Shown here piece by piece: positions 7,823 through 44,812 of a stretch of DNA of 64,000 nucleotides. Numbering within the stretch: position 1 is the first letter of the stretch; every line of letters begins with the position of its first letter. This DNA is from Convolutriloba macropyga (taxonomy: Eukaryota), in contig NC_134473.1 of the NCBI RefSeq assembly GCF_964194025.1, positions 60,202,001 through 60,266,000 of the forward strand, written 5' to 3'. Both the position numbers and the translations under genes were made by a program. The notes beneath the pieces are model-generated. The model was given only the letters and a program-made list of their open reading frames with translations. It made no database searches and was not told where the DNA came from.

Positions 7823-7836
7823 TGGCGCAGCCAGCT
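7823..7836 (+). promoter_or_regulatory. Primer-binding site of Gypsy A (tRNA-Ser-like)
   Basis: TGGCGCAGCCAGCT lies immediately after the LTR's terminal CA. TGGCGCAG is complementary to the ...CTGCG-CCA 3' end of invertebrate tRNA-Ser. The tRNA identity is inferred. Confidence 0.7.
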
Positions 7837-8044
7837 AACCTCGGATATAGAAAACTCCCCCGTCAAACTAAACATTTTGGGAACGCGCAACACTGGCACC
7901 AGCCATCTGGTAAGAGAAATTGCGAATTCGGGAGAAACTAGCAAGCTTAACACGAAAAAACATCACATGGGGTTCTCTTCTCGAACACAAACCAACGAAA
8001 GTAAAAACTTCCAGTCGAACCAAAATATGACGCAACAATAAAAG

Positions 8045-8870: not shown

Positions 8871-9039
8871 AGTAATTAACACCAAAAATCAAGAAAACGC
8901 AGAAAATTCTGATGAACAAAATGCTTATTGTATCCATTACAATGAACATTACTACTCCCTTTACGAGTCCTCAGAAGATAATCATATAGTCAACCTAATC
9001 TACACCTCGATAGGTCTCGCAGTGTTTTTTCAATCTAGT

Positions 9040-11340
9040 TAGTGGCGATATGACAGGCGCATACTGCTTCAAAGCGGGCTTTTATGGCTTGATGGATATG
9101 TCTGCCTATATTCAAAAAGCATTCGATTGTACATTGATTGGACTCAACATATGTTTTCCCAACGATATTCTCATAGTTACCAGGGGAGAAACATAAAGAA
9201 CTTGAACAGTTAGCAAAAACTCTCTGCAAAATTAGACGACGAAAACATGCGAATTAACTTTAGTTTATTACTTTAATTTATCAGAATAAATAGGTCATTA
9301 AATCATCCAATTTGGTGTAGAACCCGTAGCAAGTTAAACAGCTGCAATACCACTTCACAAAGCACCAGCACTTTTTAAAATCTGAGATCGTTTATGAGTT
9401 TGGTTTATCATTTAAGAAAATGTATTCCAGATTTATCCCAACTATGCTACCTTTACGACCACTGCTAAAAAAACACAAAATTCATATGGTTGAATGAAAA
9501 TGAATGAACATAATTTTTTTTGTTTTGTTCCAATAAAATAATGAAAAAATAGCTGAAACTACTGAAAAAAATAATTTAGCCGGGATTTTGATGAAACACG
9601 CATAAAAGGCGACGCTTCAACAAAAAGTCTAGAAGCGGCATTCAAAAAACATACCCGGATGGTTGGTAAACAGTAGCTTTCACCTTGCGTCTTCTAAACT
9701 CAGTAGAAGAAAGCTCTAGTGTTAACGAACTAGAACTTCTCGAAGGGTTTGGTCAGGAGATGAGTCGACAGACTACTTCCGTTAGATTCCTCAATCGATC
9801 ATTTATCAGCCTCAAAAATGGGTCTATTAGAGAGCTTTTTGCGCGTACTTCAACAGGCAGCTGCTAATATATCCACATTCGATGAGCAATTCATATTTGC
9901 TAAGTTAGATGCAATCAAACTTTGCGGAGAATTGTATATTAAATACACACAATTATGCTGATTTTGCGGGGAGAATTGAGGCAAAGAAAGTAATTTTAAA
10001 TATTCTACGCAACAACAACAAATTAATGCGGGCAAAAACAGGAATTTTCTGAAAACTGTAAAAATGACAAAATGATGAGCGAATGAAATACCACTCGTTA
10101 AATTTCTGGTGTGTCAGCACTCAAAACGAACATTTCAAATCCGCTTTTCTTCCAATCTTGCGCATCATTTAATTGTTTTCTAGTACTTCAACTTCTAACA
10201 GAGGTGCAAAAAAATTGCAACCTGCTTTAATGATGTCAAACTCTGAAGAAGAAACCCTATCTAACATCCGCTAAACTAAATCCTCAAATGATAGATTTGC
10301 AGACGAAGCAGGGCCGTCAAATGCAATCCCAACAGCACCCTCTACACCAGGAACGGATGCAACATCAGTCACCAATACCCCATACCCCTTCAAAAACAGG
10401 GGACTTGTACAACGATTCGTTCAATTTCGTCTGAACATTCTTTTCACGCTCAATGATGGCCAACCTAACCTCTAGGGACCCATTTCACAAAGAGATCAAT
10501 GATTGTACCCTAACTGAGAACGAACATGATTAGAGCAAATATTATCGTACATACAGAGTAACTGGAAAGATCTGCATGTGAGGAACAGCTCTGAATGTGT
10601 CGAGGATTGAATTGCGAATCCAGCACCAACAAGGACGCATATGTTGTGGCCAATCATGCAAACCGCCCGGGAAGCTGGGGAAAAACAGACACGGCATTAC
10701 ATGCAATGGTGCCCTTTCAAGCACAGCAATCTGCTGACCAAAAGAACCGAGTGCAACCCCTGCGTTAAGATTGGTTATGTATTTCCTTCCATTAAATGGA
10801 AATCACTAGTGCTATGTAGAGTCCCATTGCAGAATTTCAAATAGATTATGGTGGCACAAATTTCAATGAAAAATTCAAAAAGTATAGTTTTTGGCATGTT
10901 TAGATTGTTTTTCAAAAAACCTATTGCAGCTGAAGTATTTGATAGAGCAAACGCGCACAAAGTTTTAGAGGTCCTTCAAGACTATGTGTTATTGCACAGC
11001 ATACCATGATCAATTAGACTGGATCAAGCTAAATGTCAAATCGGGCAGCAAGTTAAATTGTTCTGTAATCAAAACAATATTAATTTTAGTGAAGCTCCAA
11101 TACGCGATCATAGAGCGATTGAATTAAAGGAGAAGCTAATACTAACAATTGAAACTCCTTCAGCATGCATTAAGACCGGGGCGCAAAAGCAGTTTAATTT
11201 GAAGGCTTCACAAAATTCAAACTTATTAGTTACGAATATGTCATCAAAAGACAATAATATGTTACCCTTTGAGGACCATTTTGAACAAAAACCTAACACA
11301 CTTTTTCGTAAAATAACTAGAGACCCAGACCCAAGCACTT
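9040..11340 (+). pseudogene. pol: Gypsy A pol pseudogene (partial RT, RNase H, integrase; protease and N-terminal RT deleted)
   Basis: RT: GFYGLMDMSAYIQKAFD and ICFPNDILIV (decayed YLDD). RNase H: KGDASTKSLEAAF and LRLLNSVEESSSVNELELL. Integrase: SYWKDLHV, IRLDQAKCQIGQQVKLFCNQNNINFSEAPIRDHRAIELKEKLI. Confidence 0.88.
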
Positions 11341-12392
11341 TATTATATGAACCAATTTTGAAGACTCATTTAGTCCATAAAACTGTCATATGGTACGATT
11401 TGGCTCAAGAAAATAGTTGGGAATATGGCTCCAGAAGCGATATAGAAACAAAAAAAGACAAAATACTCGCAGGCCGCAGTGAAAGGGAGAAAAGCGGACT
11501 CAAAAAAGTCAAGAGTAGTCCAACAGCCAAAAATAGGATTATCAATCCCAAGCACAGAATCTAGTCTTACATTAAAATTGGCAAACAGGGACTGTAATGT
11601 AAGCGCTCGAAATAGGGTCTAGAAGAGATATACGACTTTCTAGCTTCTATATCATCCGTATTGAAAACGTACAATTACACCTCTGTTATAAAGGAACGGG
11701 GGAAGCAAGAAGTAACCATTCAAAACTGAAATCTTGCGAAAATGGGAACGAGACAGAACACCAAACAGAATTGAGCCAATATGCGCAACGGAGACCCAAA
11801 CCGATTACGCGAAAAACAACTGAGGAGCTAATACAAAAACGGTAAACATGCCCTTAAAAAATCAGAAGGAGGAAACCAAATCAAACATAGACGAGTTACC
11901 GATAAAACAATTTTTGTGTCTTCAATCCACTCAAATGTAACCAGAGCAATTCGAAAGGGAACGCCCATTATGCCCAAAGCGACTGTAGCAATCGCGCCAC
12001 AAGTGTCCACACTAAAAGTCGATACGACTCTCGCAGAGCAAATTGTTGCCATTTTTCCTCTGTCTGCAAAACAGCTTCCCTCGAGACAAAAGTTGTGGCA
12101 AATCATTAAACAAAAACAAAAAACAAATAAAATTATAATCTCGACAATTCAAGAAATAGCACGCCAAAACCCTGATGGCTCCGAAACCAGCAAGCAAATT
12201 GGATCTTGATCCCAAACCCAGTACACCAAATCAATACTACGTCTTCATAAACTACGAAGAAACATCAGAGACAGTAATAGAAGCAGAATGTGCACCTGAC
12301 ACGGAATTTGAATAAGAAAACAAACTTACTGAAAATAATTATTTCATTAGATGAACAAATTGCAAATTTGTTTATTTTTGCCACGAGTGAAA

Positions 12393-12994
12393 TGTGATAT
12401 AGTGCTAATTACATTTCAATGATTCACTAATTTTGCGGAGTTAATCGATAATTTTTTGCAAAATATTAGTTTAGTTCATTTTGACATTTCGTACTTTTTG
12501 TTAGATTTCATTTCCTGAGTTGCATAACTTTTCATCAAATTTTCAGTAATGTTCTTTTGGTTATCTGACTCATTGTCTGAGGAAAAGTTTAGTTTTCTGG
12601 TCTTTGCCTCTCTGGTATTTTAATTTGTTTATCTCTGTTTGTATGTAAGTAAGTGATCAAGATGTTGATCTAACTCTTATATTTTTTTCAATCAATTGAA
12701 CAGAATTACATTACTCAGCTGACTCTCTTTTAGTACTGTCATTATGCGAAACAAATAACGCAGTAATAATTCACATCTAGAAACCAGTGGCTCGCTAAGC
12801 TAAACAATCTAGTATTGTCTTCCCTTGTATTCACGGAGCAAATGAAACCGAATTTTTTTAGGAACTGAATCATTCTGTCAAGAAGAATTTCAAGCAATTT
12901 TGTGGAATAAAAACCAACCAAACCGTTGCAATAACCAATCGGAATCTGCAGAGCAAAAATATATTTTGTTAAAAGATTTTAAAACCGCATGACG
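12393..12994 (+). repeat. 3' LTR of Gypsy A (its distal part founds the satellite array)
   Basis: Starts TGTGATATAGT after a weak purine tract (ACGAGTGAAA) and ends CCGCATGACG; diverged copy of 7204-7822. Confidence 0.85.
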
Positions 12995-15900
12995 TACACC
13001 ACAAATTAAAAAGGCAAATTGTAACTGTCATCGTCGGTACTTGGCGATAAACCGAGATAAGGACAAATAAATAAATTTTTATTTGAATCAACCAAGTGAC
13101 GGATTCAGCATTGAGAGGTCGCCTGTGATTCTGTTGGTGAAACTATTTATTCCCCTAAAATTAAATTAAAGATTTTGCAATTGCAAATTGCATACAGTTT
13201 CGTTCAAATGGAATAGCTCGGCGAAATGCTTTTTTTGTCTCATGACTTTAAAGATCATTTCGAGCCTCAATAGGATTTTTAGGGCTTTTTATATACTTTT
13301 GAAGTCCTTTGAGAGCCGAAATTGTGCTTGAAAGGGAGTCAAGAGAACGTTATATTGAAGAATTTCAATTGTTTGAAAGTGATGATTCTTTATGAACCGA
13401 ATTCAGAACTCAGCTTTATCAACAGGTTATATAAACATAGGCATGAACAGTTTTAACGGATTGATGAGACAGAAGATATGATGAAGAGCACACGAATGCC
13501 ATTGTGTTAACGAACGAGAACTTCTCGAATGGTTTGTACAAAAGATGGGTCGATAGACAATTCCATTAGATTCCTCAATCGATCATATATGCTAAGCGAA
13601 TAACGCAATAACAAATCATGTCTAGAGATCAGTCATTCGCTAAACGAAATTGTTTTGGAATTGAATAATTCTGCCAAGCAGAATTTTATGTAGTTTCGTT
13701 GAGCAAAATCAACTAAACAAAGTGGCAATAACAAATTGGAATCTGCAGAGCGAAAGCACATTTTTAAAAGATTACAGACCCGCATGACAAACACCACAAA
13801 AATAAAAAAGCAAATTGTAACTGTCATCACTTTGTGATAAATCAAGATGGGGACTTGCAATGCGAAATAGGCTTATCTTTGGATCAATCAAGTGACGGAT
13901 TCAGCGTTGAGCAAGCGCCTGTGTTTTGTTGGTGAAACTATTTATTCCCCTCAAATTAAATTAAAGATTTTGCAATGGCAAATTGCGTACAATTTCGTTC
14001 AAATAGAATTGCTTGGCAAAGTGCTTTTATTGTCTCATGACTTTAAGATCTTTTTGAGCCTCAATTGGATTTCTAAGGGGTTTTTAATGATTTTGAACTC
14101 ATTTGAGAGCCGAAATTGTGATTGAAAGGAGTCAAGAGAACGTTAAATTGAAGAATTTGAATTGTTTGAAAGTGATGATTCTTTATGAACTGAATTCAGA
14201 ACTCAGCTTTATCAACAGGTTATATAAACAGAGGCATAAACAGTTTTAAATGATTGACGGGACAAGAGATCTGATGACGAGCTTACAAATGCCATAATGT
14301 TAACAAACTAGAACTTCTTGAAGGGTTTGTACAGAAGATGGGTCGATGGACCCTTCCGTTAGATTCCTCAATCGATCATATATGCTAAGCAAATAACGCA
14401 ATAACAATTCATGTCTAGAGATCAGTCATTCACTAAGCGAAATTGTTTCGGATTTGAATAATTTTCTCAAGCAGAATTTTATGTGATTTCGTGGAGCAAA
14501 ATCAACTAAACAAAGTGGCAATAACAAATTGGAATCTGCAGAGCGAAAGTACATTTTTAAAAAGATTACAGACCCGCTTGACAAACACTACAAAAACAAA
14601 AAAGCAAATTGTAACTGTCATCACTTTTTGATAAATCAAGATGGGCACTTGCAATGCGAAATAGGCTTATCTTTGGATCAACCAAGTGACGGATTCAGCG
14701 TTGAGCAAGCGCCTGTGTTTTGTTGGTGAAACTATTTATTCCCCTCAAATTAAATTAAGGATTTTGCAATGGCAAATTTCGTACAATTACGTTCAAATGG
14801 AATATCTTGGCGAAGTGCTTTTATTGTCTCATGACTTTTAAGATCTTTTCGAGCCTCAGTAGGATTTCTTAGGGGTTTTAATGTTTTTTAACTCTTTTGA
14901 GAGACGAAATTGTGCTTGAAAGGAGTCAAGAGAACGTTAAACTCAAGAATTTGAATTGTTTGAAAGTGATGATTCTTTATGAACCGAACTCAGAACTCAG
15001 CTTTATCAACAGGTTATATATACAGAGGCATAAACAGTTTTAAATGATTGATGAGACCGGAGGTCTGATGAAGAGCATACGAATGCCGTAGTGTTAACGA
15101 GTTAGAACTTCTTGAAGGGGTTTTTATAGAAGATGGGTCGATAGAGTTTTCCGTTAGATTCCTCAATCGATCATTTATGCTAAGCAAATAACGCAATAAC
15201 AATTCATGTCTAGAGATCAGTCATTCGCTAAGCGAAAATGTTTCGGAATTGAATAATTCTGTCAGGCAGATTTTTTGTGATTCCGTAGAGCAAAATCAAC
15301 TAAACAAAGTGGCAATAACAAATTGGAATCTGCAGAGCGAAAGTACATTTTTAAAAAGATTACAGACCCGCATGACAAACACCACAAAACAAAAAAGCAA
15401 ATTGTAACTGTCATCACTTTGTGATAAATCAAGATGGGGACTTGCAAGGCGAAATAGGCTTATCTTTGGATCAACCAAGTGACCGATTCAGCGTTGAGCA
15501 AGCGCCTGTGTTTTGTTGGTGAAACTATTTTTTCCCCTCAAATTAAATTAAGGATTTTGCAATGGCAAATTGCGTACAATTTTGTTCAAATGGAATAGCT
15601 TGGCGAAGTGCTTTTATTGTCTCATGACTTTTAAGATCTTTTCGAGCCTCAGTAGGATTTCTTAGGGGTTTTAATGTTTTTTAACTCTTTTGAGAGACGA
15701 AATCGTGCTTGAAAGGAGTCAAGAGAACGTTAAACTCAAGAATTTGAATTAATTGAAAGTGATGATTCTTTATGAACCGAACTCAGAACTGAGCTTTATC
15801 AACAGGTTATATAAACAGAGGCATAAACAGTTTTAAATGATTGATGAGACCGGAGGTCTGGTGAAGAGCATACGAATGCCATAGTGTTAACGAGTTAGAA

Positions 15901-18900
15901 CTTCTTGAAGGGGTTTTTATAGAAGATGGGTCGATAGAGTTTTCCGTTAGATTCCTCAATCGATCATTTATGCTAAGCAAATAACGCAATAACAATTCAT
16001 GTCTAGAGATCAGTCATTCGCTAAGCGAAAATGTTTCGGAATTGAATAATTCTGTCAGGCAGATTTTTTGTGATTCCGTAGAGCAAAATCAACTAAACAA
16101 AGTGGCAATAACAAATTGGAATCTGCAGAGCGAAAGTACATTTTTAAAAAGATTACAGACCCGCATGACAAACACCACAAAACAAAAAAGCAAATTGTAA
16201 CTGTCATCACTTTGTGATAAATCAAGATGGGGACTTGCAAGGCGAAATAGGCTTATCTTTGGATCAACCAAGTGACCGATTCAGCGTTGAGCAAGCGCCT
16301 GTGTTTTGTTGGTGAAACTATTTATTCCCCTCAAATTAAATTAAGGATTTTGCAATGGCAAATTGCGTACAATTTCGTTCAAATGGAATAGCTTGGCGAA
16401 GTGCTTTTATTGTCTCATGACTTTTAAGATCTTTTCGAGCCTCAGTAGGATTTCTTAGGGGTTTTAATGTTTTTTAACTCTTTTGAGAGACGAAATCGTG
16501 CTTGAAAGGAGTCAAGAGAACGTTAAACTCAAGAATTTGAATTAATTGAAAGTGATGATTCTTTATGAACCGAACTCAGAACTCAGCTTTATCAACAGGT
16601 TATATAAACAGAGGCATAAACAGTTTTAAATGATTGATGAGACCGGAGGTCTGATGAAGAGCATACGAATGCCATAGTGTTAACGAGTTAGAACTTCTTG
16701 AAGGGTTTTTATAGAAGATGGGTCGATAGAGTTTTCCGTTAGATTCCTCAATCGATCATATATGCTAAGCAAATAACGCAATAACAATTCATGTCTAGAG
16801 ATCAGTCATTCGCTAAGCGAAAATGTTTCGGAATTGAATAATTCTGTCAGGCAGGTTTTTTTGTGATTTCGTAGAGCAAAATCAACTAAACAAAGTGGCA
16901 ATAACAAATTGGAATCTGCAGAGCGAAAGTACATTTTTAAAAAGATTACAGACCCGAATGACAAACACCACAAATCAAAAAAGCAAATTGTAACTGTCAT
17001 CACTTTGTGATAAATCAAGATGGGCACTTGCAATGCAAAATAGGCTTACCTTTGGATCAACCAAGTGACGGATTCAGCGTTGAGAAAGCGCCTGTGTTTT
17101 GTTGGTGAAACTGTTTATTCCCCTCAAATTAAATTAGGGATTTTGCAATGTCAAATTGCGTACAATTTCGTTCAAATGGAATAGATTGGCGAAGTGCTTT
17201 TATTGTCTCATGACTTTTAAGATCTTTTCGAGCCTCAGTAGGATTTCTTAGGGGTTTTAATGCTTTTTAACTCTTTTGAGAAACGAAATCGAGCTTGAAA
17301 GGAGTCAAGAGAACGTTAAACTCAAGAATTTGAATGGTTTGAAAGTGATTATTCTTTATGAACCGAACTCAGAACTCAGCTTTATCAACAGGTTATATAA
17401 ACAGACGCATAAACAATTTTAAATGATTGATGAGACCGGAGGTCTGATGAAGAGCATACGAATGCCATAGTGTTAACGAGTTAGAACTTCTTGAAGTGTT
17501 TTTATAGAAGATGGGTCGATAGAGTTTTCCGTTAGATTCCTCAATCGATCATATATGCTAAGCAAATAACGCAATAACAATTCATGTCTAGAGATCAGTC
17601 ATTCGCGAAGCGAAAATGTTTCGGAATTGAATAATTCTGTCAGGCAGATTTTTTTGTGATTTTGTAGAGCAAAATCAACTAAACAAAGTGGCAATAACAA
17701 ATTGGAATCTGCAGAGCGAAAGTACATTTTTAAAAAGATTACAGACCCGCATGACAAACACCACAAAACAAAAAAGCAAATTGTAACTGTCATCACTTTG
17801 TGATAAATCAAGATGGGGACTTGCAAGGCGAAATAGGCTTATCTTTGGATCAACCAAGTGACCGATTCAGCGTTGAGCAAGCGCCTGTGTTTTGCTGGTG
17901 AAACTATTTATTCCCCTTAAATTAAATTAAGGATTTTGCAATGGCAAATTGCGTACAATTTCGTTCAAATGGAACAGCTTGGGGAAGTGCTTTTATTGTC
18001 TCATGACTTTTAAGATCTTTTCGAGCCTCAGTAGGATTTCTTAGGGTTTTTAATGCTTTTTAACTCTTTTGAGAGACGAAATCGTGCTTGAAAGGAGTCA
18101 AGAGAACGTTAAACTGAAGAATTTGAATTGTTTGAAAGTGATGATTCTTTATGAACCAAACTCAGAACTCAGCTTTATCAACAGGTTATATAAACAGAGG
18201 CATAAACAGTTTTAAATGATTGATGAGACCGGAGGTCTGATGAAGAGCATACGAATGCCATAGTGTTAACGAATTAGAACTTCTTGAAGGGTTTGTACAG
18301 AAGATGGGTCGATAGAGCCTTCCGTTAGATTCCTCAATCGATCTTATACGCTAAGCAAAGAACGCAATAACAATTCATGTCTAGAGATCAGTCATTCGCT
18401 AAGCGAAATTGTTTCGGAATTGAATAGTTCTGTCAAGCAGAATTTTATGTAATTTCGTGGAGCAATATCAACTAAACAAAGTGGCAAAAACAAATTGGAA
18501 TCTGCAGAGCGAAAGCACATTTTTAAAAAGATTACAGACCCGCATGACAAACACCACAAAAATAAAAAAGCAAATTGTAACTGTCATCACTTTGTGATAA
18601 ATCAAGATGGGGAATTGCAATGCGAAATAGGCTTATCTTTGGATCAACCAAGTAACGGATTCAGCGTTGAGCAAGCGCCTGTGTTTTGCTGGTGAAACTA
18701 TTTATTCCCCTCAAATTAAATTAAGGATTTTGCCTTGGCAAATTGCGTACAATTTCGTTCAAATGGAATAGCTTGGCAAAGTGCTTTTATTGTCTCATGA
18801 CTTTTAAGTTCGTTTCAAGCCTCAGTAGGATTTCTTAGGGGTTTTAATGCTTTTTAACTCTTTTGAGAGACAAAATAGTGCTTGAAAGGAGTCAAGAGAG

Positions 18901-19966
18901 CGTTAAACTGATGAATTTGATTTGTTTGAAAGTGATGATTCTTTATGAACCGAACTCAGAACTCAGCTTTATCAACAGGTTATATAAACAGAGGCATAAA
19001 CAGTTTTAAATGATTGATGAGACCGGAGGTCTGATGAAAAGCATACGAATGCTATAGTGTTAACGAATTAGAACTTCTTGAAGGGTTTGTACAGAAGATG
19101 GGTCGATAGAGCCTTCCGTTAGATTCCTCAATCGATCTTATACGCTAAGCAAAGAACGCAATAACAATTCATGTCTAGAGATCAGTCATTCGCTAAGCGA
19201 AATTGTTTCGGAATTGAATAGTTCTGTCAAGCAGAATTTTATGTGATTTCGTGGAGCAATATCAACTAAACAAAGTGGCAAAAACAAATTGGAATCTGCA
19301 GAGCGAAAGCACATTTTTAAAAAGATTACAGACCCGCATGACAAACACCACAAAATAAAAAAGCAAATTGTAACTGTCATCACTTTGTGATATATCAAGA
19401 TGGGGAATTGCAATGCGAAATAGGCTTATCTTTGGATCAACCAAGTAACGGATTCAGCGTTGAGCAAGCGCCTGTGTTTTGCTGGTGAAACTATTTATTC
19501 CCCTCAAATTAAATTATGGATTTTGCCTTGGCAAATTGCGTACAATTTCGTTCAAATGGAATAGCTTGGCAAAGTGCTTTTATTGTCTCATGACTTTTAA
19601 GTTCGTTTTAAGCCTCAGTAGGATTTCTTAGGGGTTTTAATGCTTTTTAACTCTTTTGAGAGACAAAATAGTGCTTGAAAGGAGTCAAGAGAGCGTTAAA
19701 CTGATGAATTTGATTTGTTTGAAAGTGATGATTCTTTATGAACCGAACTCAGAACTCAGCATTATCAACAGGTTATATAAACAGAGGCATATACAGTTTC
19801 AAATGATTGATGAGACCGGAGGTCTGATGAAGAGCATACGAATGCCATAGTGTTAACGAGTTAGAACTTCTTGAAAGATTTTTATAGAAGATGGGTCGAT
19901 TGAGTTATCCGTTAGATTCCTCAATCGATCATATATGCTAAGCAAATAACGCAATAACAATTCATG

Positions 19967-22900
19967 TCTAGAGATCAGTCATTCTCTAAGCGAAAATGTT
20001 TCGGAATTGAATAATTCTGTCAGGCAGATTTTTTTGTGATTTCGTAGAGCAAAATCAACTAAACAAAGTGGCAATAACAAAATGGAATCTGCAGAGCGAA
20101 AGTACATTTTTAAAAAGATTACAGACCCGCATGACAAACACCACAAAACAAAAAAGCAAATTGTAACTGTCATCACTTTGTGATAAATCAAGATGGGGAC
20201 TTGCAAGGCGAAATAGGCTTATCTTTGGATCAACCAAGTGACCGATTCAGCGTTGAGCAAGCGCCTGTGTTTTGTTGGTGAAACTATTTATTCCCCTCAA
20301 ATTAAATTAAGGATTTTGCAATGACAAACTGCGTACAATTTCGTTCAAATGGAATAGCTTGGCGAAGTGCTTTTATTGTCTCATGACTTTTAAGATCTTT
20401 TCGAGCCTCAGTAGGATTTCTTAGGGGTTTTAATGCTTTTTAACTCTTTTGAGAGACAAAATCGTGCTTGAAAGGAGTCAAGAGAACGTTAAACTGAAGA
20501 ATTTGAATTGTTTGAAAGTGATGATTCTTTATGAACCGCACTCAGAACTCAGCTTTATCAACAGGTTATATAAACAGAGGCATAAACAGTTTTAAATGAT
20601 TGATGAGACCGGAGGTCTGATGAAGAGCATACAAATGCCATAGTGTTAACGAGTTAGAACTTCTTGAAGGGTTTGTACAAAAGATGGGTCGATAGACCCT
20701 TCCGTTAGATTCCTCAATCGATCCTATATGCTAAGCAAATAACGCAATAGCAATTCATGTCTAGAGATCAGTCATTCGCTAAGCGAAATTGTTTCGGAAT
20801 TGAATAATTCTGTCAAGCAGAATTTTATGTGATTTCGTGGAGCAAAATCAACTAAACAAAGTGGCAATAACAAATTGTAATCTGCAGAGCGAAAGTACAT
20901 TTTTAAAAAGATTACAGACCCGCATGACAAACACCACCAAAACAAAAAAGCAAATTGTAACTGTCATCACTTTGTAATAAATCAAGATGGGGATTTGCAA
21001 TGCGAAATAGGCTTATCTTTGGATCAACCAAGTAACGGATTCAGCTTTTAGCGAGCGCCTGTGTTTTGCTGGTGAAACTATTTATTCCCCTCAAATTAAA
21101 TTAAGGATTTTGCCTTGGCAAATTGCGTACAATTTTGTTCAAATGGAATAGCTTGGCAAAGTGCTTTTATTGTCTCATGACTTTTAAGTTCGTTTCAAGC
21201 CTCAGTAGGATTTCTTAGGGGTTTTAATGCTTTTTAACTCTTTTGAGAGACAAAATAGTGCTTGAAGGGAGTCAAGAGAGCGTTAAACTGATGAATTTGA
21301 TTTGTTTGAAAGTGATGATTCTTTATGAACCGAACTCAGAACTCAGCTTTATCAACAGGTTATATAAACAGAGGCATAAACAGTTTTATATGATTGATGA
21401 GACCGGAGGTCTGATGAAGAGCATACGAATGCCATAGTGTTAACGAATGAGAACTTCTTGAAGGGTTTGTACAAAAGATGGGTCGATAGACCCTTCCGTT
21501 AGATTCCTCAATCGATCCTATATGCTAAGCAAATAACGCAATAGCAATTCATGTCTAGAGATCAGTCATTCGCTAAGCGAAATTGTTTCGGAATTGAATA
21601 ATTCTGTCAAGCAGAATTTTATGTGATTTTGTGGAGCAAAATCAACTAAACAAAGTGGCAATAACAAATTGGAATCTGCAGAGCGAAAGTACATTTTTAA
21701 AAAGATTACAGACCCGCATGACAAACACCACAAAACAAAAAAGCAAATTGTAACTGTCATCACTTTGTAATAAATCAAGATGGGGACTTGCAATGCGAAA
21801 TAGGCTTATCTTTGGATCAACCAAGTGACGGATTCAGCGTTGAGCAAGCGCCTGTGTTTTGTAGGTGAAACTACTTATTCACCTCAAATTAAATTAAAGA
21901 TTTCACAATGGCAAATTGCGTACAGTTTCGTACAAATAGAATAGCTTGGCGAAGTGCTTTTATTGTCTCATGACTTTAAGATCTTTTCGAGCCTCAATAG
22001 GTTTTTTTAGGGGTTTTTAATGCTTTTGAACCCTTTTGAGAGCCGAAATTGTGCTTGAAAGGAGTCGAGAGAACGTTAAATTGAAGAATTTGAATTGTTT
22101 GAAAGTGAGGATTCTTTATGAACTGAATTCAGAACTCAGCTTTATCAACAGGTTATATAAACAGAGGCATAAACAGTTTGAAATGATTGATGAGACAACA
22201 GATTTGAAGACGAGCATACCGATGCCATAGTGTTTACAAACTACAACTTCTTGAAGGGTTTGTACAGAAGATGGGTCGATAGACCCTTCCGTTAGATTCC
22301 TCAATCGATCGTATATGCTAAGCAAATAACGCAATAGCAATTCATGTCTAGAGATCAGTCATTCGCTAAGCGAAATTGTTTCGGAATTGAATAATTCTGT
22401 CAAGCAGAATTTTATGTGATTTCGTGGAGCAAAATCAACTAAACAAAGTGGCAATAACAAATTGGAATCTGCAGAGCGAAAGTACATTTTAAAAAGATTA
22501 CAGACCCTCATGACAAACACCACCAAAACAAAAAAGCAAATTGTAACTGTCATCACTTTGTAATAAATCAAGATGGGGACTTGCAATGCGAAATAGGCTT
22601 ATCTTTGGATCAACCAAGTGACGGATTCAGCGTTGAGCAAGCGCCTGTGTTTTGTTGGTGAAACTATCTATTATCCCCTCAGATTAAATTAAGGATTTCG
22701 CAATGGCAAATTGCGTACAGTTTCGTACAAATAGAATAGCTTGGCGAAGTGCTTTTATTGTCTCATGACTTTAAGATCTTTTCGAGCCTCAATAAGTTTT
22801 TTTTAGGGGTTTTTAATGCTTTTGAACCCTTTTGAGAGCCGAAATTGTGCTTGAAAGGAGTCAAGAGAACGTTAAATTGAAGAATTTGAATTGTTTGAAA

Positions 22901-25900
22901 GTGATGATTCTTTATGAACTGAATTCAGAACTCAGCTTTATCAACAGGTTATATAAACAGAGGCATAAACAGTTTGAAATGATTGATGAGACAACAGATC
23001 TGAAGACGAGCATACCGATGCCATAGTGTTTACAAACTACAACTTTTTGAAGGGTTTGTACAGAAGATGGGTCGATTGAGTTATCCGTTAGATTCCTCAA
23101 TCGATCATATATGCTAAGCAAATAACGCAATAACAATTCATGTCTAGAGATCAGTCATTCGCTAAGCGAAAATGTTTCGGAATTGAATAATTCTGTCAGG
23201 CAGATTTTTTTGTGATTTCGTAGAGCAAAATCAACTAAACAAAGTGGCAATAACAAATTGGGATCTGCAGAGCGAAAGTACATTTTTAAAAAGATTACAG
23301 ACCCGCATGACAAACACCACAAAACAAAAAAGCAAATTGTAACTGTCATCACTTTGTGATAAATCAAGATGGGGACTTGCATGGCGAAATAGGCTTATCT
23401 TTGGATCAACCAAGTGACCGATTCAGCGTTGAGCAAGCGCCTGTGTTTTGTTGGTGAAACTATTTATTCCCCTCAAATTAAATTAAGAATTTTGCAATGG
23501 CAAATTGCGTACAATTTCGTTCAAATGGAATAGCTTGGCGAAGTGCTTTTATTGTCTCATGACTTTTAAGAACTTTTCGAGCCTCCGTAGGATTTCTTAG
23601 GGGTTTTAATGCTTTTTAACTCTTTTGAGAGACAAAATCGTGCTTGAAAGGAGTCAAGAGAACGTTAAACTGAAGAATTTGAATTGTTTGAAAGTGATGA
23701 TTCTTTATGAACCGAACTCAGAACTCAGCTTTACCAACAGGTTATATAAACAGAGGCATAAACAGTTTTAAATGATTGATGAGACCGGAGGTCTGATGAA
23801 GAGCATACGAATGCCATAGTGTTAACGAGTTAGAACTTCTTGAAGGGTTTGTACAAAAGATGGGTCGATAGACCCTTCCGTTAGATTCCTCAATCGATCC
23901 TATATGCTAAGCAAATAACGCAATAGCAATTCATGTCTAGAGATCAGTCATTCGCTAAGCAAAATTGTTTCGGAATTGAATAATTCTGTCAAGCAGAATT
24001 TTATGTGATTTCGTGGAGCAAAATCAACTAAACAAAGTGGCAATAACAAATTGGAATCTGCAGAGCGAAAGTACATTTTTAAAAAGATTACAGACCCGCA
24101 TGACAAACACCACCAAAACAAAAAAGCCAATTGTAACTGTCATCACTTTGTAATAAATCAAGATTGGGATTTGCAATGTGAAATAGGCTTATCTTTGGAT
24201 CAACCAAGTAACGGATTCAGCGTTTAGCAAGCGCCTGTGTTTTGCTGGTGAAACTATTTATTCCCCTCAAATTAAATTAAGGATTTTGCCTTGGCAAATT
24301 GCGTACAATTTTGTTCAAATGGAATAGCTTGGCAAAGTGCTTTTATTGTCTCATGACTTTTAAGTTCGTTTCAAGCCTCAGTAGGATTTCTTAGGGGTTT
24401 TAATGCTTTTTAACTCTTTTGAGAGACAAAATAGTGCTTGAAGGGAGTCAAGAGAGCGTTAAACTGATGAATTTGATTTGTTTGAAAGTGATGATTCTTT
24501 ATGAACCGAACTCAGAACTCAGCTTTATCAACAGGTTATATAAACAGAGGCATAAACAGTTTTATATGATTGATGAGACCGGAGGTCTGATGAAGAGCAT
24601 ACGAATGCCATAGTGTTAACGAATGAGAACTTCTTGAAGGGTTTGTACAAAAGATGGGTCGATAGACCCTTCCGTTAGATTCCTCAATCGATCCTATATG
24701 CTAAGCAAATAACGCAATAGCAATTCATGTCTAGAGATCAGTCATTCGCTAAGCGAAATTGTTTCGGAATTGAATAATTCTGTCAAGCAGAATTTTATGT
24801 GATTTCGTGGAGCAAAATCAACTAAACAAAGTGGCAATAACAAATTGGAATCTGCAGAGCGAAAGTACATTTTTAAAAAGATTACAAACCCGCATGACAA
24901 ACACCACCAAAACAAAAAAGCAAATTGTAACTGTCATCACTTTGTAATAAATCAAGATGGGGACTTGCAATGCGAAATAGGCTTATCTTTGGATCAACCA
25001 AGTGACGGATTCAGCGTTGAGCAAGCGCCTGTGTTTTGTTGGTGAAACTACTTATTCACCTCAAATTAAATTAAGGATTTCACAATGGCAAATTGCGTAC
25101 AGTTTCGTACAAATAGAATAGCTTGGCGAAGTGCTTTTATTGTCTCATGACTTTAAGATCTTTTCGAGCCTCAAAAGGTTTTTTTAGTGGTTTTTAATGC
25201 TTTTGAACCCTTTTGAGAGCCGAAATTGTGCTTGAAAGGAGTCAAGAGAACGTTAAATTGAAGAATTTGAATTGTTTGAAAGTGATGATTCTTTATGAAC
25301 TGAATTCAGAACTCAGCTTTATCAACAGGTTATATAAACAGAGGCATAAACAGTTTGAAATGATTGATGAGACAACAGATCTGAAGACGAGCATACCGAT
25401 GCCATAGTGTTTACAAACTACAACTTCTTGAAGGGTTTGTACAGAAGATGGGTCGATAGACCCTTTCGTTAGATTCCTCAATCGATCGTATATGCTAAGC
25501 AAATAACGCAATAGCAATTCATGTCTAGAGATCAGTCATTCGCTAAGCGAAATTGTTTCGGAATTGAATAATTCTGTCAAGCAGAATTTTATGTGATTTC
25601 GTGGAGCAAAATCAACTAAACAAAGTGGCAATAACAAATTGGAATCTGCAGAGCGAAAGCACATTTTTAAAAAGATTACAGACCCGCATGACAAACACCA
25701 CCAAAACAAAAAAGCAAATTGTAACTGTCATCACTTTGTAGTAAATCAAGATGGGGTCTTGCAATGCGAAATAGGCTTATCTTTGGATCAACCAAGTGAC
25801 GGATTCAGCGTTGAGCAAGCGCCTGTGTTTTGTTGGTGAAACTATCTATTATCCCCTCAGATTAAATTAAGGATTTCGCAATGGCAAATTGCGTACAGTT

Positions 25901-26319
25901 TCGTACAAATAGAATAGCTTGGCGAAATGCTTTTATTGTCTCATGACTTTAAGATCTTTTCGAGCCTCAATAGGTTTTTTTAGGAGTTTTTAATGCTTTT
26001 GAACCCTTTTGAGAGCCGAAATTGTGCTTGAAAGGAGTCAAGAGAACGTTAAATTGAAGAATTTGAATTGTTTGAAAGTGATGATTCTTTATGAACTGAA
26101 TTCAGAACTCAGCTTTATCAACAGGTTATATAAACAGAGGCATAAACAGTTTGAAATGATTGATGAGACAACAGATCTGAAGACGAGCATACTGATGCCA
26201 TAGTGTTTACAAACTACAACTTCTTGAAGGGTTTGTACAGAAGATGGGTCGATAGACCCTTCCGTTAGATTCCTCAATCGATCGTATATGCTAAGCAAAT
26301 AACGCAATAGCAATTCATG
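19967..26319 (+). repeat. Higher-order repeat: two copies of a 4-monomer (~3176 bp) block
   Basis: Diagnostic variants recur at +3176/3177: GAAGGGAGTC and GAATGAGAAC (units 20760/23936), CTACTTATTCACCTC (21554/24730), CTATCTATTATCCCCTCAG (22347/25524). ORF pairs 21243/24419, 22036/25213 and 22832/26009 show the same offset. Confidence 0.88.
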
Positions 26320-28104
26320 TCTAGAGATCAGTCATTTGCTAAGGGAAATTGTTTCGGAATTAAATAACTCTGTCAAGCAGAATTTTATGTCATTTCGTGG
26401 ACTAAAATCAATTAAAGAAAATGGCAATTAAAAAATCGGAATCTGCAGAGCAAAAGTATACTTTTTGAAAAGATTACAAACCCGCATGACATGCACCACA
26501 ACAAAAGGCAAATTGTACTGTCATCAATTTGTGATAAATCAAGATGGGGACTTGCAATGCGAAATAGCTTTATCTTTGGATCAACCAAGTGATGGATTCA
26601 GCATTGCAAGATGGCCTGTGTTTTCAATGATGAAGCTATTTATTCCCCTCAAGTAAAATTATGGATTTCGCAATGGCAAATTTCGTACAATTTCGTTCAA
26701 ATGGAATAGCTTGGCGAAGTGTTTTTTTTGTCTCATGACTTTATGATCATTTCGAGCCTCAACAGGATTTTTTAGGGGTTTTTAATGCTTTTGAACTATT
26801 TTGAGAGCCGAAATTGTTCTTGAAAGTGTGTCAAAAGAACGTTAAATTGAAGAATTTCAATCGTTTGAAAGTTATTATTCTTTATGAACCGAATTCAGAA
26901 CTCAGCTTTATCAACAGGTTATATAAACAGAGGCATAAACAGTTTGAAATGATTGATGAGACAGAAGATCTGATAAAGAGCATACGAATGCCATTGTGTT
27001 AACGAACTAGAACTTCTCGAATGGTTTGTACAAAAGATGGGTCGATAGACCCTTCCGTTAGATTCCTCAATCGATCCTATATGCTATGCAAACAACGAAA
27101 TAGAAATTCATTTCTGGAGATCAGTCATTCGCTAAGCGAAATTGTTTCGGAATTGAATAATTCTGTCAAGCAGAAATTTATTTGATTTCGTGGAGCAAAA
27201 TCAACTAAACAAAGTGGCAATAACAAATTGGAATCTGCAGAGCAAAAGTACATTTTTAAAAAGATTACAGACCCGCATGACAAACACCACAAAACAAAAA
27301 AGCAAATTGTAACTGTCATCACTTTGTGATAAATCAAGATGGGGACTTGCAAGGCGAAATAGGCTTATCTTTGGATCAACCAAGTGACGGATTCAGCGTT
27401 GAGCAAGCGACCGTGTTTTGTTGGTGAAACTATTTAATCCCCTCAAAATAAATTCAGGATTTTGCAATGGCAAATTGCGTACAATTTCGTTCAAATGGAA
27501 TAGCTTGGCGAAGTGCTTTTATTGTCTCATGACTTTTATGATCATTTCGAGCCTCAACAGGATTTTTTAGGGGTTTTTAATGCTTTTGAACTCTTTTGAG
27601 AGCCAAAATTGTTCTTGAAAGGGTGTCAAAAGAACGTTAAACTGAAGAATTTCGATCGTTTGAAAGTTATTATTCTTTATGAATCGAATTCAGAACTCAG
27701 CTTTGTCAACAGTTTATATGAACAGAGGCATAAACAGTTTTAAATGATTGACGAGACCGATGATCTGATGAAGAGCATACGAATGCCATAGTGTTAACGA
27801 ACTAGAACTTCTCGAAGGGTTTGTACAGAAGATGAATCGATGGACCCTTCCGATAGATTCCTCAATTGATCGTATATGCTAAGCAAATAACGCAATAGCA
27901 ACTCATGTCTAGAGATCAGTCATTCACTGAGCGAAATTATTTCGGAATTGAATAATTATGTCAAACAGAATTTTATGTGATTTCGTGGAGCAAAATCAAA
28001 TGAACAAAATGGCAATAACAAATCGGAATCTTCAGAGCAAAAGTACATTTTTTAAAAAGATAACAAACCCGCATGACATACACCACAAAAATAAAAAGGC
28101 AAAT

Positions 28105-28591
28105 TGTAACTGTCATCAATTTGTGATAAATCAAGATAGGGACTTGCAATGCGAAATAGCTTTATCTTTGGATCAACCAAGTGACGGACTCAGCGTTGCA
28201 AGATGGCCTGTGTTTTCAATGGTGAAGCTATTTATTCCCCTCAAATTAAATTAAGGATTTTGCAATGGCAATTTGCGTAGAAAAACAATTGAAATAGCTT
28301 CTCAAGTTGCTTTTGTTTCTTTATTTTTTAAATGATTTTGTTGACTATTGCGATCCTCAAACGGAATTTTTAAGGGTTATAAATGGTTTTAATGTCTTTT
28401 GAGAGCCAAAGTTGTGCTTGAAAGGGAGTCAAGAGAACGTTAAATTGAAGAATTTCAATTGATTGAAAGTGTTAATTCTTTATGAACTGGCCTCAGAACT
28501 CTGCTTCATCAGCAGGTTATACAAACAGAAACATAAACAGTTTTAAATGATGGATGAGACAGTAGATCTGATGAAGAGCATACGAATGCCA
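28105..28591 (-). repeat. Truncated LTR of Gypsy C (probable 3' LTR; same segment in every monomer, first at 13020-13501)
   Basis: Begins TGTAAC on the + strand and aligns with 36518-36940 (e.g. CAAATTGCGTACAATTT vs AAAATTGCGTACAATTT, GCTTGGCGAA, GAGCCAAA..TGTGCTT, GAACTCA..T.TATCA.CAG). The homology starts exactly beside the PBS-like site at 36504-36517. Confidence 0.7.
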
Positions 28592-30674
28592 TAGTGTTAT
28601 CGAACTAGAACTTCTCGAAGGGTTTGGTCAGAAGATGGGTCGGTGGACTCTTCCGTCAGATTTTTCAATCGATCATTTACCAGGTTCAAAAATGGGTCTG
28701 GTAGAGAGCAATTCGCGCGAACCTCAACTGGCAGCTGCTAACAACCACAAAATAAGTAATGAAGAGCGAGTGTAATACCACACATTACTATTCTAGTCTG
28801 TCAGCCCACAAAGAAAACAATTCAAATTCGCTTTTTGTCAAACCTTGCGCTTCAAATCAGTTGTTTTCTAATCTTTCAACTTTTGACCGAGTTGCAAATA
28901 AATTCTAATCTGTATTAATGATGTTAAACTCTGATGATGAAGTCGTATCCAGCATCCGCCCAACTGCACCCTAAAAAGCTACATTTGCAGACGAAGCATG
29001 GCCGTCAAATGCACCCCAAACAAAACCTTCTACAGCAGGAACAGATGCAATATCAGTCACCAATACCCCTACAAAAAAGAGATGAATTGTCCAACGCTAC
29101 CCACTCAAATTCGTCTTATCATTTTTTTTTTCACGCTCACTGATAGTCAGCCTCACTTCTAAGGACCCAAATTTCAAAGAAATCGATGAATGTATCCCAA
29201 ATGAGAACGAAAAGTGATTTAAGCAAATATTATCGTTCATACAGAGTTACTGGAAGGATACAGAGTTACTATGAATGTGCCGATGATTGAATTGCGATAC
29301 CCAGCACCATCAAAGACGCATATGTTGAGGCCGACCGTGCAACCCGCCCGTGAAGCTGGGTAATAACTGACATGGTAACACATGCAATGGTGCCAATTCA
29401 AGCACAGCGATCTGCTGACCAAAAGAACCTAGTGCAACGCCTGCGTTAAGATTGGTTATATATTTTTTTCTAATAAAAGAAAATCATTTAGGCTATGTAA
29501 AGTCTCAATGAAGAAATTCAAATAGAACATTGTGGCCAGTTTTCAGTAAAAAAAAGGTGAAGAAGTATATTTTCCAGCACGTTTAGATTGTTTTAGGATA
29601 AAAACAATTGGTTAACATATGTTTATATGACTTTTTTCAGGATCAAGATCCCAAATTATATTACTCAGCGGATGAACTCAATTGTGCTTACTGAATTCTT
29701 TCATTGCTGTCCATTTTGGCAACGTGCTCCATCTATTGTTCTGCAACCGTTTAGTTCTATAAACTATCAGGTGGTACGAATTGGCACAAGAAGATTGATG
29801 GGAAGATGGCTTCAGAAGCAATGGGGAATTCTAAAAAAGACGACATACTCTAACTCAGGACGCAGTGAAATGGAGAAATGCCGGCCTAGAAGAAATGAAG
29901 AGTATTGCAACACCCAGAAATAGGATTACCCATCCCATGCACGGAATCATTTCTCACATTAAAAGTGGCAAACAGAAAAAACCGAAAAGTAAGCACTCGA
30001 ATTTGAGTCTAGAAGGGATATACGACTTTCTAGCAGCAAGATCAATGCAGTGAAAACGGACAATTACAGCTCTGGGATAAAAGAATCGGGGAAGCAAGAA
30101 ATAACCATCCAAAATTCAGATCCTGCAAAAATGGGAACAAGGGCAGAACACCAAACAGAATTGAGCCAATATGCGGAACGGGACCCATACCGATTACGGG
30201 AAAAACAACTGAGGAGCTAAAACAAACACTTTAAACATGCCTAAAATAAATCAGAATGAGGAAAGCAAATCAAACGTAGACGAATTACTGATGATACAAG
30301 TTTACTGTCTTCAACCAAATCCAATGTAACCAGAGCAAATCGAAAGGGAACGCCAATTATGCCCAAAGAGATTGTACCAATTGCGCCACAAGTGTCCACA
30401 CCGCAAGTAAATGGCAATCCCGCAGATCAAATTTTAGAAATTACTCCTCCGTCTGCGAAACAGGCTCCTTCGAGATAAAAGCGGCGGCAAATCATTAAAC
30501 AAGAACAAAAAGCAAGTAAAAATATAATCACGACAACACAAGAAACAGCACGCCAAAACCCTGACGGCCCTGAAACCAGCATGCAAATTGGATCTTTCTT
30601 CCAAACTCACTACAACAATTTAATGGTACTTCTTCATAAAATACGAGGAAACATTAAAGACAGTAATAGAAGCA
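28592..30674 (+). mobile_element. Gypsy fragment B: diverged second copy of element A segment 9717-12286 (RNase H, integrase, tail)
   Basis: Colinear with A from TAGTGTT(A)ACGAACTAGAACTTCTCGAAGGGTTTGGTCAG to GACAGTAATAGAAGCA. No LTRs. Has an extra deletion in the integrase core. Confidence 0.9.
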
Positions 30675-32967
30675 ATACCAAAACTGCTTGAATCTATAAC
30701 CGGCATCCAGTATGCATTCTTTATTGTCTTCCAGATAAATATAAAATTGTTGCCGCATACGCAAAAAATTTTGGGGTGGCAATTGCGCCAATAGCTGTGG
30801 ATGTAAGGCAAAATCTGCTGACATCTTTGTTACCATTGATGAAGCGGACTCGGATTTTTTTCTAGGCAGCATCGCTTGCAGTGATGCTGGCCAGCAACAT
30901 GTTTTCAGAATTTTGGGATAAGGCAAAAATAAAGGCATCAGTGTTTAATTGCTAGTGGTAGGTGTAATTATGATAATCAATGTTGCTTCGATTGCAGGTG
31001 TAGGGTAGATTGGATATCACTTTGTGATAATTAGGATCCGGTTGCGTTCTCTTTGGATGGGGTAGACCCAAATTTCAAAGAAATCGATGAATGTATCCCA
31101 AATGAGAACGAAAAGTGATTTAAGCAAATATTATCGTTCATACAGAGTTACTGGAAGGATACAGAGTTACTATGAATGTGCCGATGATTGAATTGCGATA
31201 CCCAGCACCATCAAAGACGCATATGTTGAGGCCGACCGTGCAACCCGCCCGTGAAGCTGGGTAATAACTGACATGGTAACACATGCAATGGTGCCAATTC
31301 AAGCACAGCGATCTGCTGACCAAAAGAACCTAGTGCAACGCCTGCGTTAAGATTGGTTATATATTTTTTTCTAATAAAAGAAAATCATTTAGGCTATGTA
31401 AAGTCTCAATGAAGAAATTCAAATAGAACATTGTGGCCAGTTTTCAGTAAAAAAAAGGTGAAGAAGTATATTTTCCAGCACGTTTAGATTGTTTTAGGAT
31501 AAAAACAATTGGTTAACATATGTTTATATGACTTTTTTCAGGATCAAGATCCCAAATTATATTACTCAGCGGATGAACTCAATTGTGCTTACTGAATTCT
31601 TTCATTGCTGTCCATTTTGGCAACGTGCTCCATCTATTGTTCTGCAACCGTTTAGTTCTATAAACTATCAGGTGGTACGAATTGGCACAAGAAGATTGAT
31701 GGGAAGATGGCTTCAGAAGCAATGGGGAATTCTAAAAAAGACGACATACTCTAACTCAGGACGCAGTGAAATGGAGAAATGCCGGCCTAGAAGAAATGAA
31801 GAGTATTGCAACACCCAGAAATAGGATTACCCATCCCATGCACGGAATCATTTCTCACATTAAAAGTGGCAAACAGAAAAAACCGAAAAGTAAGCACTCG
31901 AATTTGAGTCTAGAAGGGATATACGACTTTCTAGCAGCAAGATCAATGCAGTGAAAACGGACAATTACAGCTCTGGGATAAAAGAATCGGGGAAGCAAGA
32001 AATAACCATCCAAAATTCAGATCCTGCAAAAATGGGAACAAGGGCAGAACACCAAACAGAATTGAGCCAATATGCGGAACGGGACCCATACCGATTACGG
32101 GAAAAACAACTGAGGAGCTAAAACAAACACTTTAAACATGCCTAAAATAAATCAGAATGAGGAAAGCAAATCAAACGTAGACGAATTACTGATGATACAA
32201 GTTTACTGTCTTCAACCAAATCCAATGTAACCAGAGCAAATCGAAAGGGAACGCCAATTATGCCCAAAGAGATTGTACCAATTGCGCCACAAGTGTCCAC
32301 ACCGCAAGTAAATGGCAATCCCGCAGATCAAATTTTAGAAATTACTCCTCCGTCTGCAAAACAGGCTCCTTCGAGATAAAAGCGGCGGCAAATCATTAAA
32401 CAAGAACAAAAAGCAAGTAAAAATATAATCACGACAACACAAGAAACAGCACGCCAAAACCCTGACGGCCCTGAAACCAGCATGCAAATTGGATCTTTCT
32501 TCCAAACTCACTACAACAATTTAATGGTACTTCTTCATAAAATACGAGGAAACATTAAAGACAGTAATAGAAGCAATACCAAAACTGCTTGAATCTATAA
32601 CCGGCATCCAGTATGCATTCTTTATTGTCTTCCAGATAAATATAAAATTGTTGCCGCATACGCAAAATATTTTGGGGTGGGCAATTGCGCCAATAGCTGT
32701 GGATGTAAGGCAAAATCTGCTGACATCTTTGTTACCATTGATGAAGCGGACTCGGATTTTTTCTAGGCAGCATCGCTTGCAGTGATGCTGGCCAGCAACA
32801 TGTTTTCAGAATTTTGGGATAAGGCAAAAATAAAGGCATCAGTGTTTAATTGCTAGTGGTAGGTGTAATTATGATAATCAATGTTGCTTCGATTGCAGGT
32901 GTAGGGTAGATTGGATATCACTTTGTGATAATTAGGATCCGGTTGCGTTCTCTTTGGATGGGGTAGA
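29164..32967 (+). repeat. Near-perfect 1901-bp tandem duplication (29164-31064 / 31065-32967)
   Basis: Identical ORFs at +1901 (29237/31138, 29627/31528, 29865/31766). Junction GATGGGGTA-GA-CCCAAATTTC at ~31065 with 2-bp GA overlap. I saw only about three differences by eye. Confidence 0.96.
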
Positions 32968-36503: not shown

Positions 36504-36517
36504 AGCTGACTGCAACA
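36504..36517 (-). promoter_or_regulatory. Degenerate PBS of Gypsy C
   Basis: Minus strand reads TGTTGCAGTCAGCT, an 11/14 match to the PBS of element A (TGGCGCAGCCAGCT). It lies exactly where LTR homology begins, upstream of gag. Confidence 0.55.
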
Positions 36518-41775: not shown

Positions 41776-41795
41776 TCAAACATTGGTTAAATTCA

Positions 41796-44754: not shown

Positions 44755-44812
<58 letters not shown>
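43584..44812. other. N-masked or gapped low-complexity block: three N runs in (TTA)n-like sequence, ending in (AT)n
   Basis: N at 43584-43970, 44015-44316 and 44352-44564; TTA-rich islands between them; pure AT repeat at 44757-44812. Confidence 0.95.

Follow-up and report, generated by a model that had tools for sequence, protein, structure and literature searches.

How can a tandem repeat arise whose unit is composed of pieces of different transposable elements (TEs), and can that origin still be read at the locus? The question was raised by a 64,000-bp stretch of Convolutriloba macropyga DNA (assembly GCF_964194025.1, contig NC_134473.1, forward-strand positions 60,202,001 to 60,266,000; hereafter the window), in which positions 12741-28679 (+) are occupied by a tandem array of 20 head-to-tail units of ~793 bp (~16 kb, one locus). 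A first-pass annotation of the window had described the array as a satellite whose monomer is a chimera of three retrotransposon parts. The origin in which we place high confidence is that ~845 bp of transposon debris were amplified in tandem, in situ, via unequal crossing-over. This reading is carried by the tiling of the unit, the continuity of both edges with their flanks, a mosaic shared by the core units, an age gradient and the single-locus status, each of which was observed directly.

Extent, composition and distribution of the repeat

The unit at 16002-16793 was compared to the window using BLAST, and 20 successive same-strand copies were recovered from 12846 to 28679 at periods of 792-798 bp, confirming the ~793-bp repeat that had been placed at 12741-28680. 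Tandem Repeats Finder (TRF) did not report the array in the window because the ~793-bp period exceeds the TRF maximum period of 500 bp. Units were named m1-m20 from left to right in a register starting at 16002. The XbaI site (TCTAGA) that had been expected in nearly every unit was found 19 times in the sequence, once per unit at ~793-bp spacing, and was lost only in m19. As contiguous head-to-tail copies of one unit, the units form a tandem array in the broad "satellitome" sense. The array was divided as follows:

12741-13620 (+): edge unit m1 (proposed founding copy S1), ~880 bp, retaining ~50 bp of LTR (long terminal repeat) that is absent from the other units
13621-27907 (+): core units m2-m19, a common mosaic with an m20-like left and an m1-like right part, pairwise identity 86-99%
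19967-26319 (+): 4-unit block that was re-duplicated (m10-13 copied as m14-17), position-by-position identity 98-99%
27908-28679 (+): edge unit m20 (proposed founding copy S2), continuing straight into fragment B

Each of the 20 units was then compared by sensitive BLAST with the array flanks, which contain decayed retroelements termed A, B and C (coordinates below). The unit consists of four parts, namely ~206 bp of the A LTR end, a 25-bp spacer, ~470 bp of a "C"-family LTR and ~100 bp of the RNase H/integrase boundary of an A-like pol. Three non-overlapping match families were present in 20/20 units, and they tile the monomer as the first-pass annotation had anticipated (unit positions in the 16002 register):

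Unit 756-792 plus 1-170: A LTR end, matching the 5' LTR (7585-7822) at 75-79% and the 3' LTR (12739-12773) at 86%
Unit ~209-683: matching 36530-36943 on the same strand at 59-68% identity, E down to 1e-23
Unit 659-765: matching 9702-9806 in the A interior at 77-85% identity

The 25-bp spacer lies between the LTR end CATGACA and the middle-piece start TGTAAC, both termini being as previously read, and was matched by no element. The earlier reading depended on the middle segment aligning with 36518-36940, and local alignment scores of 57-79 were obtained for this pair. Dinucleotide shuffles scored 18-20 ± 3 (z = 12-23), the highest score in 53 control windows was 27, and the reverse strand gave 15-18. 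The LTR pieces within the unit stem from two families and lie in opposite orientations. No consistent open reading frame was found across units.

Three junction words were searched across the 1.18-Gb assembly allowing ≤ 3 mismatches, with reversed words as controls. The words returned 18, 19 and 15 matches, all within the array (19 for J3, the pol-to-LTR junction described below), and the reversed controls returned 0. A whole-monomer genome search skipped common words and left the array itself unreported, and the edge units m1 and m20 were queried instead. Apart from the 20 units, these searches recovered only the homologous stretch of A itself and, on other contigs, a few isolated pol fragments of 50-70 bp. 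By both approaches, the composite unit was not found elsewhere in the assembly; the chimera is locus-specific, and the genome-wide dispersal of complete monomers that would have spoken for an ordinary transposon was not seen.

This distribution bears on whether the array could be an internal tandem repeat of an ordinary dispersed transposon, or an LTR-interior-LTR tandem produced by double insertion or LTR-LTR exchange. Such tandems do exist in this genome: contig C10 (15812907-15816627) carries 2.7 tandem units of 1389 bp (93% identity) with a C-family LTR block beside C-type reverse transcriptase (RT)/RNase H sequence, apparently an internally deleted element in LTR-interior-LTR-interior tandem. 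Double insertions are also a documented route to TE arrays in the available text of PMC5932611. Nevertheless, the junction words and the composite are confined to this one locus, the unit boundaries fall mid-LTR and mid-pol rather than at element termini, and the unit holds a non-element 25-bp flank plus pieces of two unrelated families in opposite orientations. The array thus lacks the one LTR, one interior and terminal junctions of an LTR-interior-LTR tandem, and we consider this explanation scarcely credible. Given that the same LTR block adjoins C-type RT/RNase H sequence on C10, the C-family LTR status of the unit middle is independently supported. A dense short-period tandem repeat (many self-matches offset in 3-bp steps) lies ~750 bp from the C10 tandem.

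As independent data, short-read unitigs of two samples, both from the same study, were aligned over the left boundary. Unitigs span 12492-13348 (LTR, spacer and middle) with no differences, at single-copy depths of about 7.6, 30, 43 and 48. Core-type unitigs (13335-13453 and 13562-13641) were recovered at 5.6-7.6x single-copy depth in the two samples, and the assembly has the corresponding exact words in 4 and 2 units. Such depth for variants held by 2-4 units therefore places the copy number in the tens, neither hundreds nor thousands. The sequenced individuals may carry a longer array than the one assembled, or its copy number may vary.

The same data address assembly artefact, in which the assembler would have inflated a duplication of two or three copies. 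Tandem repeats are prone to assembly error, and the depth ratios differ from the assembled multiplicities. However, the units differ by 1-20% in a structured manner (graded edges, sub-families and the 4-unit block) that is unlike mis-assembly, and the core-type depth in both samples indicates that copies, if anything, exceed the assembled number. An artefact of this kind is given almost no weight. As for the term "satellite", the homogenised head-to-tail arrangement agrees with it, but the abundance does not: classical satellites combine high copy number with long arrays and tend to occupy several loci or heterochromatin blocks, and here there is one locus of 16 kb with 20 assembled units and tens by depth.

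Boundaries, breakpoints and parent sequences

The elements flanking the array are as follows:

7204-7821 (+): element A 5' LTR, starting TGTGATATAG and ending CGCATGACA, followed by TGGCGCAGCC, which resembles a primer binding site (PBS)
7822-12392 (+): element A interior, heavily decayed, with a gag zinc knuckle at ~8700, an RT ..DILIV.. block at ~9150, an RNase H-like stretch at 9670-9810 and an integrase side
12393-12993 (+): element A 3' LTR, which from ~12741 onwards supplies the LTR sequence of m1
28584-32967 (+): fragment B, a 5'-truncated A-family element starting from the RNase H end, its first ~96 bp being the tail of m20
33000-36510 (-): element C interior, with a gag knuckle-like motif at ~35.7 kb, an RT motif at ~34.2 kb and an RNase H-like stretch at ~33.6 kb, in element order
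36511-37083 (-): element C 5' LTR, ending GTTGCA beside internal sequence, a distant homologue of the unit middle

At the left edge, m1 is an uninterrupted continuation of the A 3' LTR. At the right edge, m20 runs unbroken into B (9709-9867 matches 28584-28741 at 85%, collinear beyond). Both boundaries, which the first-pass annotation had placed inside the A 3' LTR and in fragment B, were confirmed by sequence and by BLAST. Because the edges are continuous with the A 3' LTR and with B, the unit is taken to be a pre-existing juxtaposition that was amplified in situ, and the earlier inference that a junction of three TE segments was amplified, with its origin readable at the locus, is supported by the tiling together with this continuity. 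Given that A-LTR and B sequence are present in every unit, the array is younger than both the A insertion and the B truncation.

The breakpoints and the one new junction were read at the following positions:

12739-12745 (+): left founding breakpoint, TCATTAT in the A 3' LTR
28673-28679 (+): right founding breakpoint, TCATTTA in fragment B
13575-13600 (+): first instance of J3, the sole novel junction (pol RNase H end to mid-LTR of A), as read from the sequence

J3 reads GATCAT(T/A)TATGC. Its parents break after GATCATTTA on the B side and between GTCATTA and TGCG on the LTR side, both with TCATT, which is found at the two breakpoints and at the junction. A further ~50 bp is held by both A LTRs and by m1 and is absent from m2-m20, from which a founding unit of ~845 bp and a deletion in the right-hand lineage follow. 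The ~845-bp figure agrees with the first XbaI interval.

These boundaries qualify two statements of the first-pass annotation. It had called the monomer a "three-way chimera", and the amplified unit does span the junctions of three TE fragments, but it was not assembled from three donors, as only the RNase H-LTR junction is new. It had also held that all parents are still adjacent. The edges of the array, namely the A 3' LTR and fragment B, are the direct parents, whereas the two segments that had been named, 9717-9806 and 36518-36940, are only paralogues. The former, in A, is a paralogue of B. The latter is distant, as the unit middle differs from 36511-36945 by a Kimura two-parameter distance (K2P) of 0.50-0.57, that of a distant family relative. 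In the best-conserved block, K2P is 0.47-0.54 between the units and the window C LTR and 0.61-0.71 between the units and the C10 copies, and the window C LTR is equidistant from the units and the C10 copies. Being in the same orientation, the unit middle and 36511-37083 may be a pair of LTRs from a single, very old C insertion that B disrupted, but their K2P is ~0.5, with the C10 copies only marginally more distant.

As for family assignments, both A LTRs start TGTGATATAG and end CGCATGAC(A/G), and the pair is 73% identical by BLAST (76% ungapped, K2P 0.29). The target-site duplication of A is weak (3-4 of 5 positions match). A thus has the LTR pair with TG..CA termini and, after the 5' LTR, the PBS-like sequence of a Ty3/Gypsy element. 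The pol order RT - RNase H - integrase in A and B was read by eye from motifs in open pieces, none of them at Pfam level. B is collinear with A 9709-12285 at 78-85% identity (BLAST), and no A-type LTR was found downstream of B. The C interior is only ~60% similar to A, and C is therefore a different family. Halves of a single inverted element were considered for B and C and ruled out, as B is 78-85% identical to A and the C interior ~60% similar.

Thirty open pieces from A, B and C were searched against Pfam, and none of these elements gave a match; the sole match in those searches was RVT_1 at 40264-40902, part of another element. A word-indexed protein search with B's first open piece gave no candidates, and a protein search of the organism's own genome found no better-preserved copy. 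An exhaustive HMMER search returned one real relative of 127 aa spanning the breakpoint (P0002) and one spurious low-complexity match (P0001). P0002 has no Pfam match, and its contig has no annotated domains. Its language-model look-alikes, which serve as a lead only, are mostly PF17917 RT_RNaseH and PF17921 Integrase_H2C2 clusters. The ~100-bp piece of the unit is most likely the RNase H/integrase boundary of a Ty3/Gypsy-type pol, a sequence-based assignment in which the lead agrees with the motif order and no domain match is involved. The labels "Gypsy" and "RNase H" of the first-pass annotation are consequently kept as agreeing with motif order and lead, but not as Pfam-level identifications.

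Relatives of these elements were also observed outside the array. Contig C8 contains two full-length A-type LTRs 127 kb apart (~8370100-8370733 and ~8497400-8498038). Their identity to the LTRs of A is ~69%, and in the distal part the two copies agree at 91%. An ENA contig filed as a metagenome assembly (ERZ25071359) contains a decayed element 67-74% identical to A/B over the RT, the RNase H end and integrase-side sequence, presumably from a eukaryote related to the window's organism. Within the window, a further decayed retroelement is located at 38219-42083 (+), where direct repeats (38219-38521 and 41796-42083, 76%) surround the open frame 40264-40902, the only window piece with a Pfam match (RVT_1, E = 1e-20).

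Growth of the array and alternative routes

In the identity matrix, edge units are ~80% identical to the core and 73% identical to each other, while core units are 86-99% identical and form sub-families with non-adjacent members. A homogenised interior, diverged edges and a 4-unit higher-order block are the marks of concerted evolution. In sliding windows, the core was ~89% identical to m20 and 55-79% to m1 at unit positions 1-300, and ~88% identical to m1 and 57-69% to m20 at positions 340-650. At sites that differ between m1 and m20, the core majority was m20-like over m1-like by 46:7 left of ~265 and m1-like over m20-like by 60:31 to the right (Fisher p = 4e-10). The same mosaic was found in 18/18 core units. 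An unequal crossover between S2 and S1 gives exactly a unit with an S2 left and an S1 right part, from which it follows that the whole core could derive from one recombinant. Phrased alternatively, the outermost half-units never joined in exchange.

Distances were calculated in order to place these events relative to one another:

A LTR pair: K2P 0.29
m1 vs m20: K2P 0.32 in the LTR part, 0.27 in the middle and 0.18 in the pol part
Core units: K2P 0.04-0.14
Copies of the 4-unit block: identity 98-99%

By this ordering, the first duplication is nearly as old as the A insertion.

The proposed history starts from a locus that would have contained, in order, the A 3' LTR end, the 25-bp flank, a C-family LTR fragment that kept its outer terminus but lacked ~140 bp at the inner end, and B from its RNase H/integrase boundary. 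A founding duplication would first have joined the B point at 28673-28679 back to the A LTR point at 12739-12745, ~845 bp upstream, with TCATT common to both, giving copies S1 and S2 plus the single new junction. Unequal crossover of S2 with S1 would next have produced a hybrid third unit (S2 left, S1 right), from which the 18 core units would derive by more unequal exchange. Later rounds would account for the sub-families and the recent duplication of the 4-unit block, and the outermost half-units would have escaped homogenisation and decayed. What we infer is the succession of these steps and a causal role of microhomology in the first duplication.

A rolling-circle route would differ at the first step: the ~845-bp segment would be excised as an extrachromosomal circle closed at TCATT, and a concatemer would re-enter the site by homologous recombination, the core being homogenised later. 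It predicts the same unit, single novel junction and edge continuity, and the study of maize CRM repeats names this route as one that could not be excluded there (PMC3648361). On its own, however, it predicts neither the m20-like-left/m1-like-right core nor the ~50-bp deletion common to m20 and the core but not m1; extra later exchanges are needed for both. We regard it as unlikely.

Several observations weigh against in situ amplification by unequal crossing-over as reconstructed here. To the right, the mosaic is mixed (31:60), and a single crossover fits no better than multiple conversion tracts or edge units lying outside homogenisation. The sequences in which the microhomology was read have since diverged by ~20-30%, and the A 5' LTR differs at the homologous breakpoint site, so that the original overlap may have been shorter. 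In its LTR part, the core shows no greater similarity to the 3' LTR of A (K2P 0.28-0.32) than to the 5' LTR (0.28-0.30), which means either that the founding duplication is nearly as old as the A insertion or that 206 bp are too short to order the two. Finally, to judge from read depth, some variants may be present at 1.5-3.5x their assembled copy number.

Other tandem duplications were noted in the window. Within B, 29164-31066 and 31065-32967 form a 1.9-kb tandem duplication (99.8% identical, far younger than the array), whose junction runs from GGGGTAGA into CCCAAATT with breakpoints overlapping by just 2 bp (GA). Old duplications with periods of ~516 and ~539 bp (70-72% identical) are located at 34376-34934/34892-35449, in the C interior, and at 53623-54147/54162-54682. 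These 0.5-1.9-kb duplications suggest that the region is prone to local tandem duplication.

Function, known systems and remaining features of the window

The array is most likely without function, a neutral by-product of replication or recombination errors in a TE-rich region and a low-copy satellite "seed". No Rfam families were found in the array, and no RNA runs containing it were found, a result of little weight as perhaps no RNA runs exist for the organism.

Maintenance by function, either as a small-RNA source in a silencing cluster or as a chromatin- or protein-binding element, is judged distinctly improbable. The array has persisted since an event nearly as old as the A insertion, it carries LTR sequence of two families in opposite orientations, and unit positions 477-565 (e.g., 16478-16566) are 93% identical between the two oldest units compared to 79% overall. 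On the other side, the RNA and Rfam searches were empty, the conservation of 477-565 is a post hoc observation (binomial p = 0.007 before correction), and turnover by unequal exchange accounts for persistence without selection. Block 477-565 of the C-type LTR piece is also the best conserved part in comparison with the window C LTR and the C10 copies, and it might mark a recombination- or protein-binding site favouring tandemisation.

The first-pass annotation had stated that TE-derived satellites are typically traced to one element. TE-derived arrays are indeed known, but composite multi-TE monomers and a matching scenario have already been published. According to a 2025 review in DNA Research, satellites have been seen whose monomers resemble several TEs in different stretches; the review regards how they arose as an open question and puts forward tandemisation within "TE graveyards" (PMC12628747). 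The present locus resembles that model in its consecutive stretches of different TEs (A-LTR, C-family LTR and A/B pol pieces tile the monomer) and in being a tandemised segment of nested, truncated and decayed elements, amplified in place: the edges continue into the A LTR and truncated B, and the neighbours are decayed and without Pfam matches. Unlike the review, which offers a scenario for established satellites of untraceable origin, the locus is single and low-copy, its flanks still run on into the elements from which it came, and one can read both the founding breakpoints and the first recombinant. It is a concrete, dissectable instance of the published proposal, a process known in outline, and no new kind of element.

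The maize repeats CRM1TR and CRM4TR derive from centromeric Ty3/Gypsy elements, occupy one or two loci and were modelled with illegitimate recombination as the first step and conversion or unequal exchange as the means of growth (PMC3648361). They share with our array monomers of ~700-800 bp composed partly of LTR and partly of non-LTR element sequence, few loci and local homogenisation. They differ in stemming from a single element family (LTR plus untranslated region) with no single-step short direct repeat at the junction, whereas here there are three fragments, two families plus flank and a TCATT overlap at the junction. In Drosophila, TE tandem dimers arising from double insertion are described as satellite substrates (PMC5932611, available text). 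There too, transposon sequence becomes a tandem array that is expandable by unequal exchange, but the unit as described in that text is a whole element or element plus LTR with an insertion-made junction, and here it is an arbitrary slice across element boundaries with its junction within LTR and pol. The arrays of Lathyrus sativus satellites likewise originate from LTR retrotransposons; in the available portion of that source (PMC7004042) they start from retrotransposon-derived tandem repeats, while ours starts after insertion, at a junction of dead copies.

The locus displays the published scenario directly, as the sources still flank the array and the new junction with its overlap is visible. 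The core-wide mosaic allows the first recombinant to be inferred, and divergence gives the order of the later steps. The locus also shows that an array of this type is able to survive long as a small seed at one site, and it is a good teaching and benchmark case, being an unusually readable example. A stronger version, to which we assign a small chance, holds that it is a long-lived seed in a specific sense: the composite would have been born almost as early as the A insertion and kept at a single locus in low copy under continuous turnover, and it may be absent, still two-copy or a true satellite in other populations or sister species. If true, the locus would allow the TE-graveyard origin of composite satellites to be tested step by step, with datable stages.

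The remaining features of the window were minor. Three N runs (387, 302 and 213 bases) are located at 43584-44564, in a region with a G+C of 0.20. Short A/T-rich palindromic low-complexity tracts at 2350-2416 and 44757-44812 match each other, and a 334-bp imperfect palindrome (74%) is located at 62264-62597.

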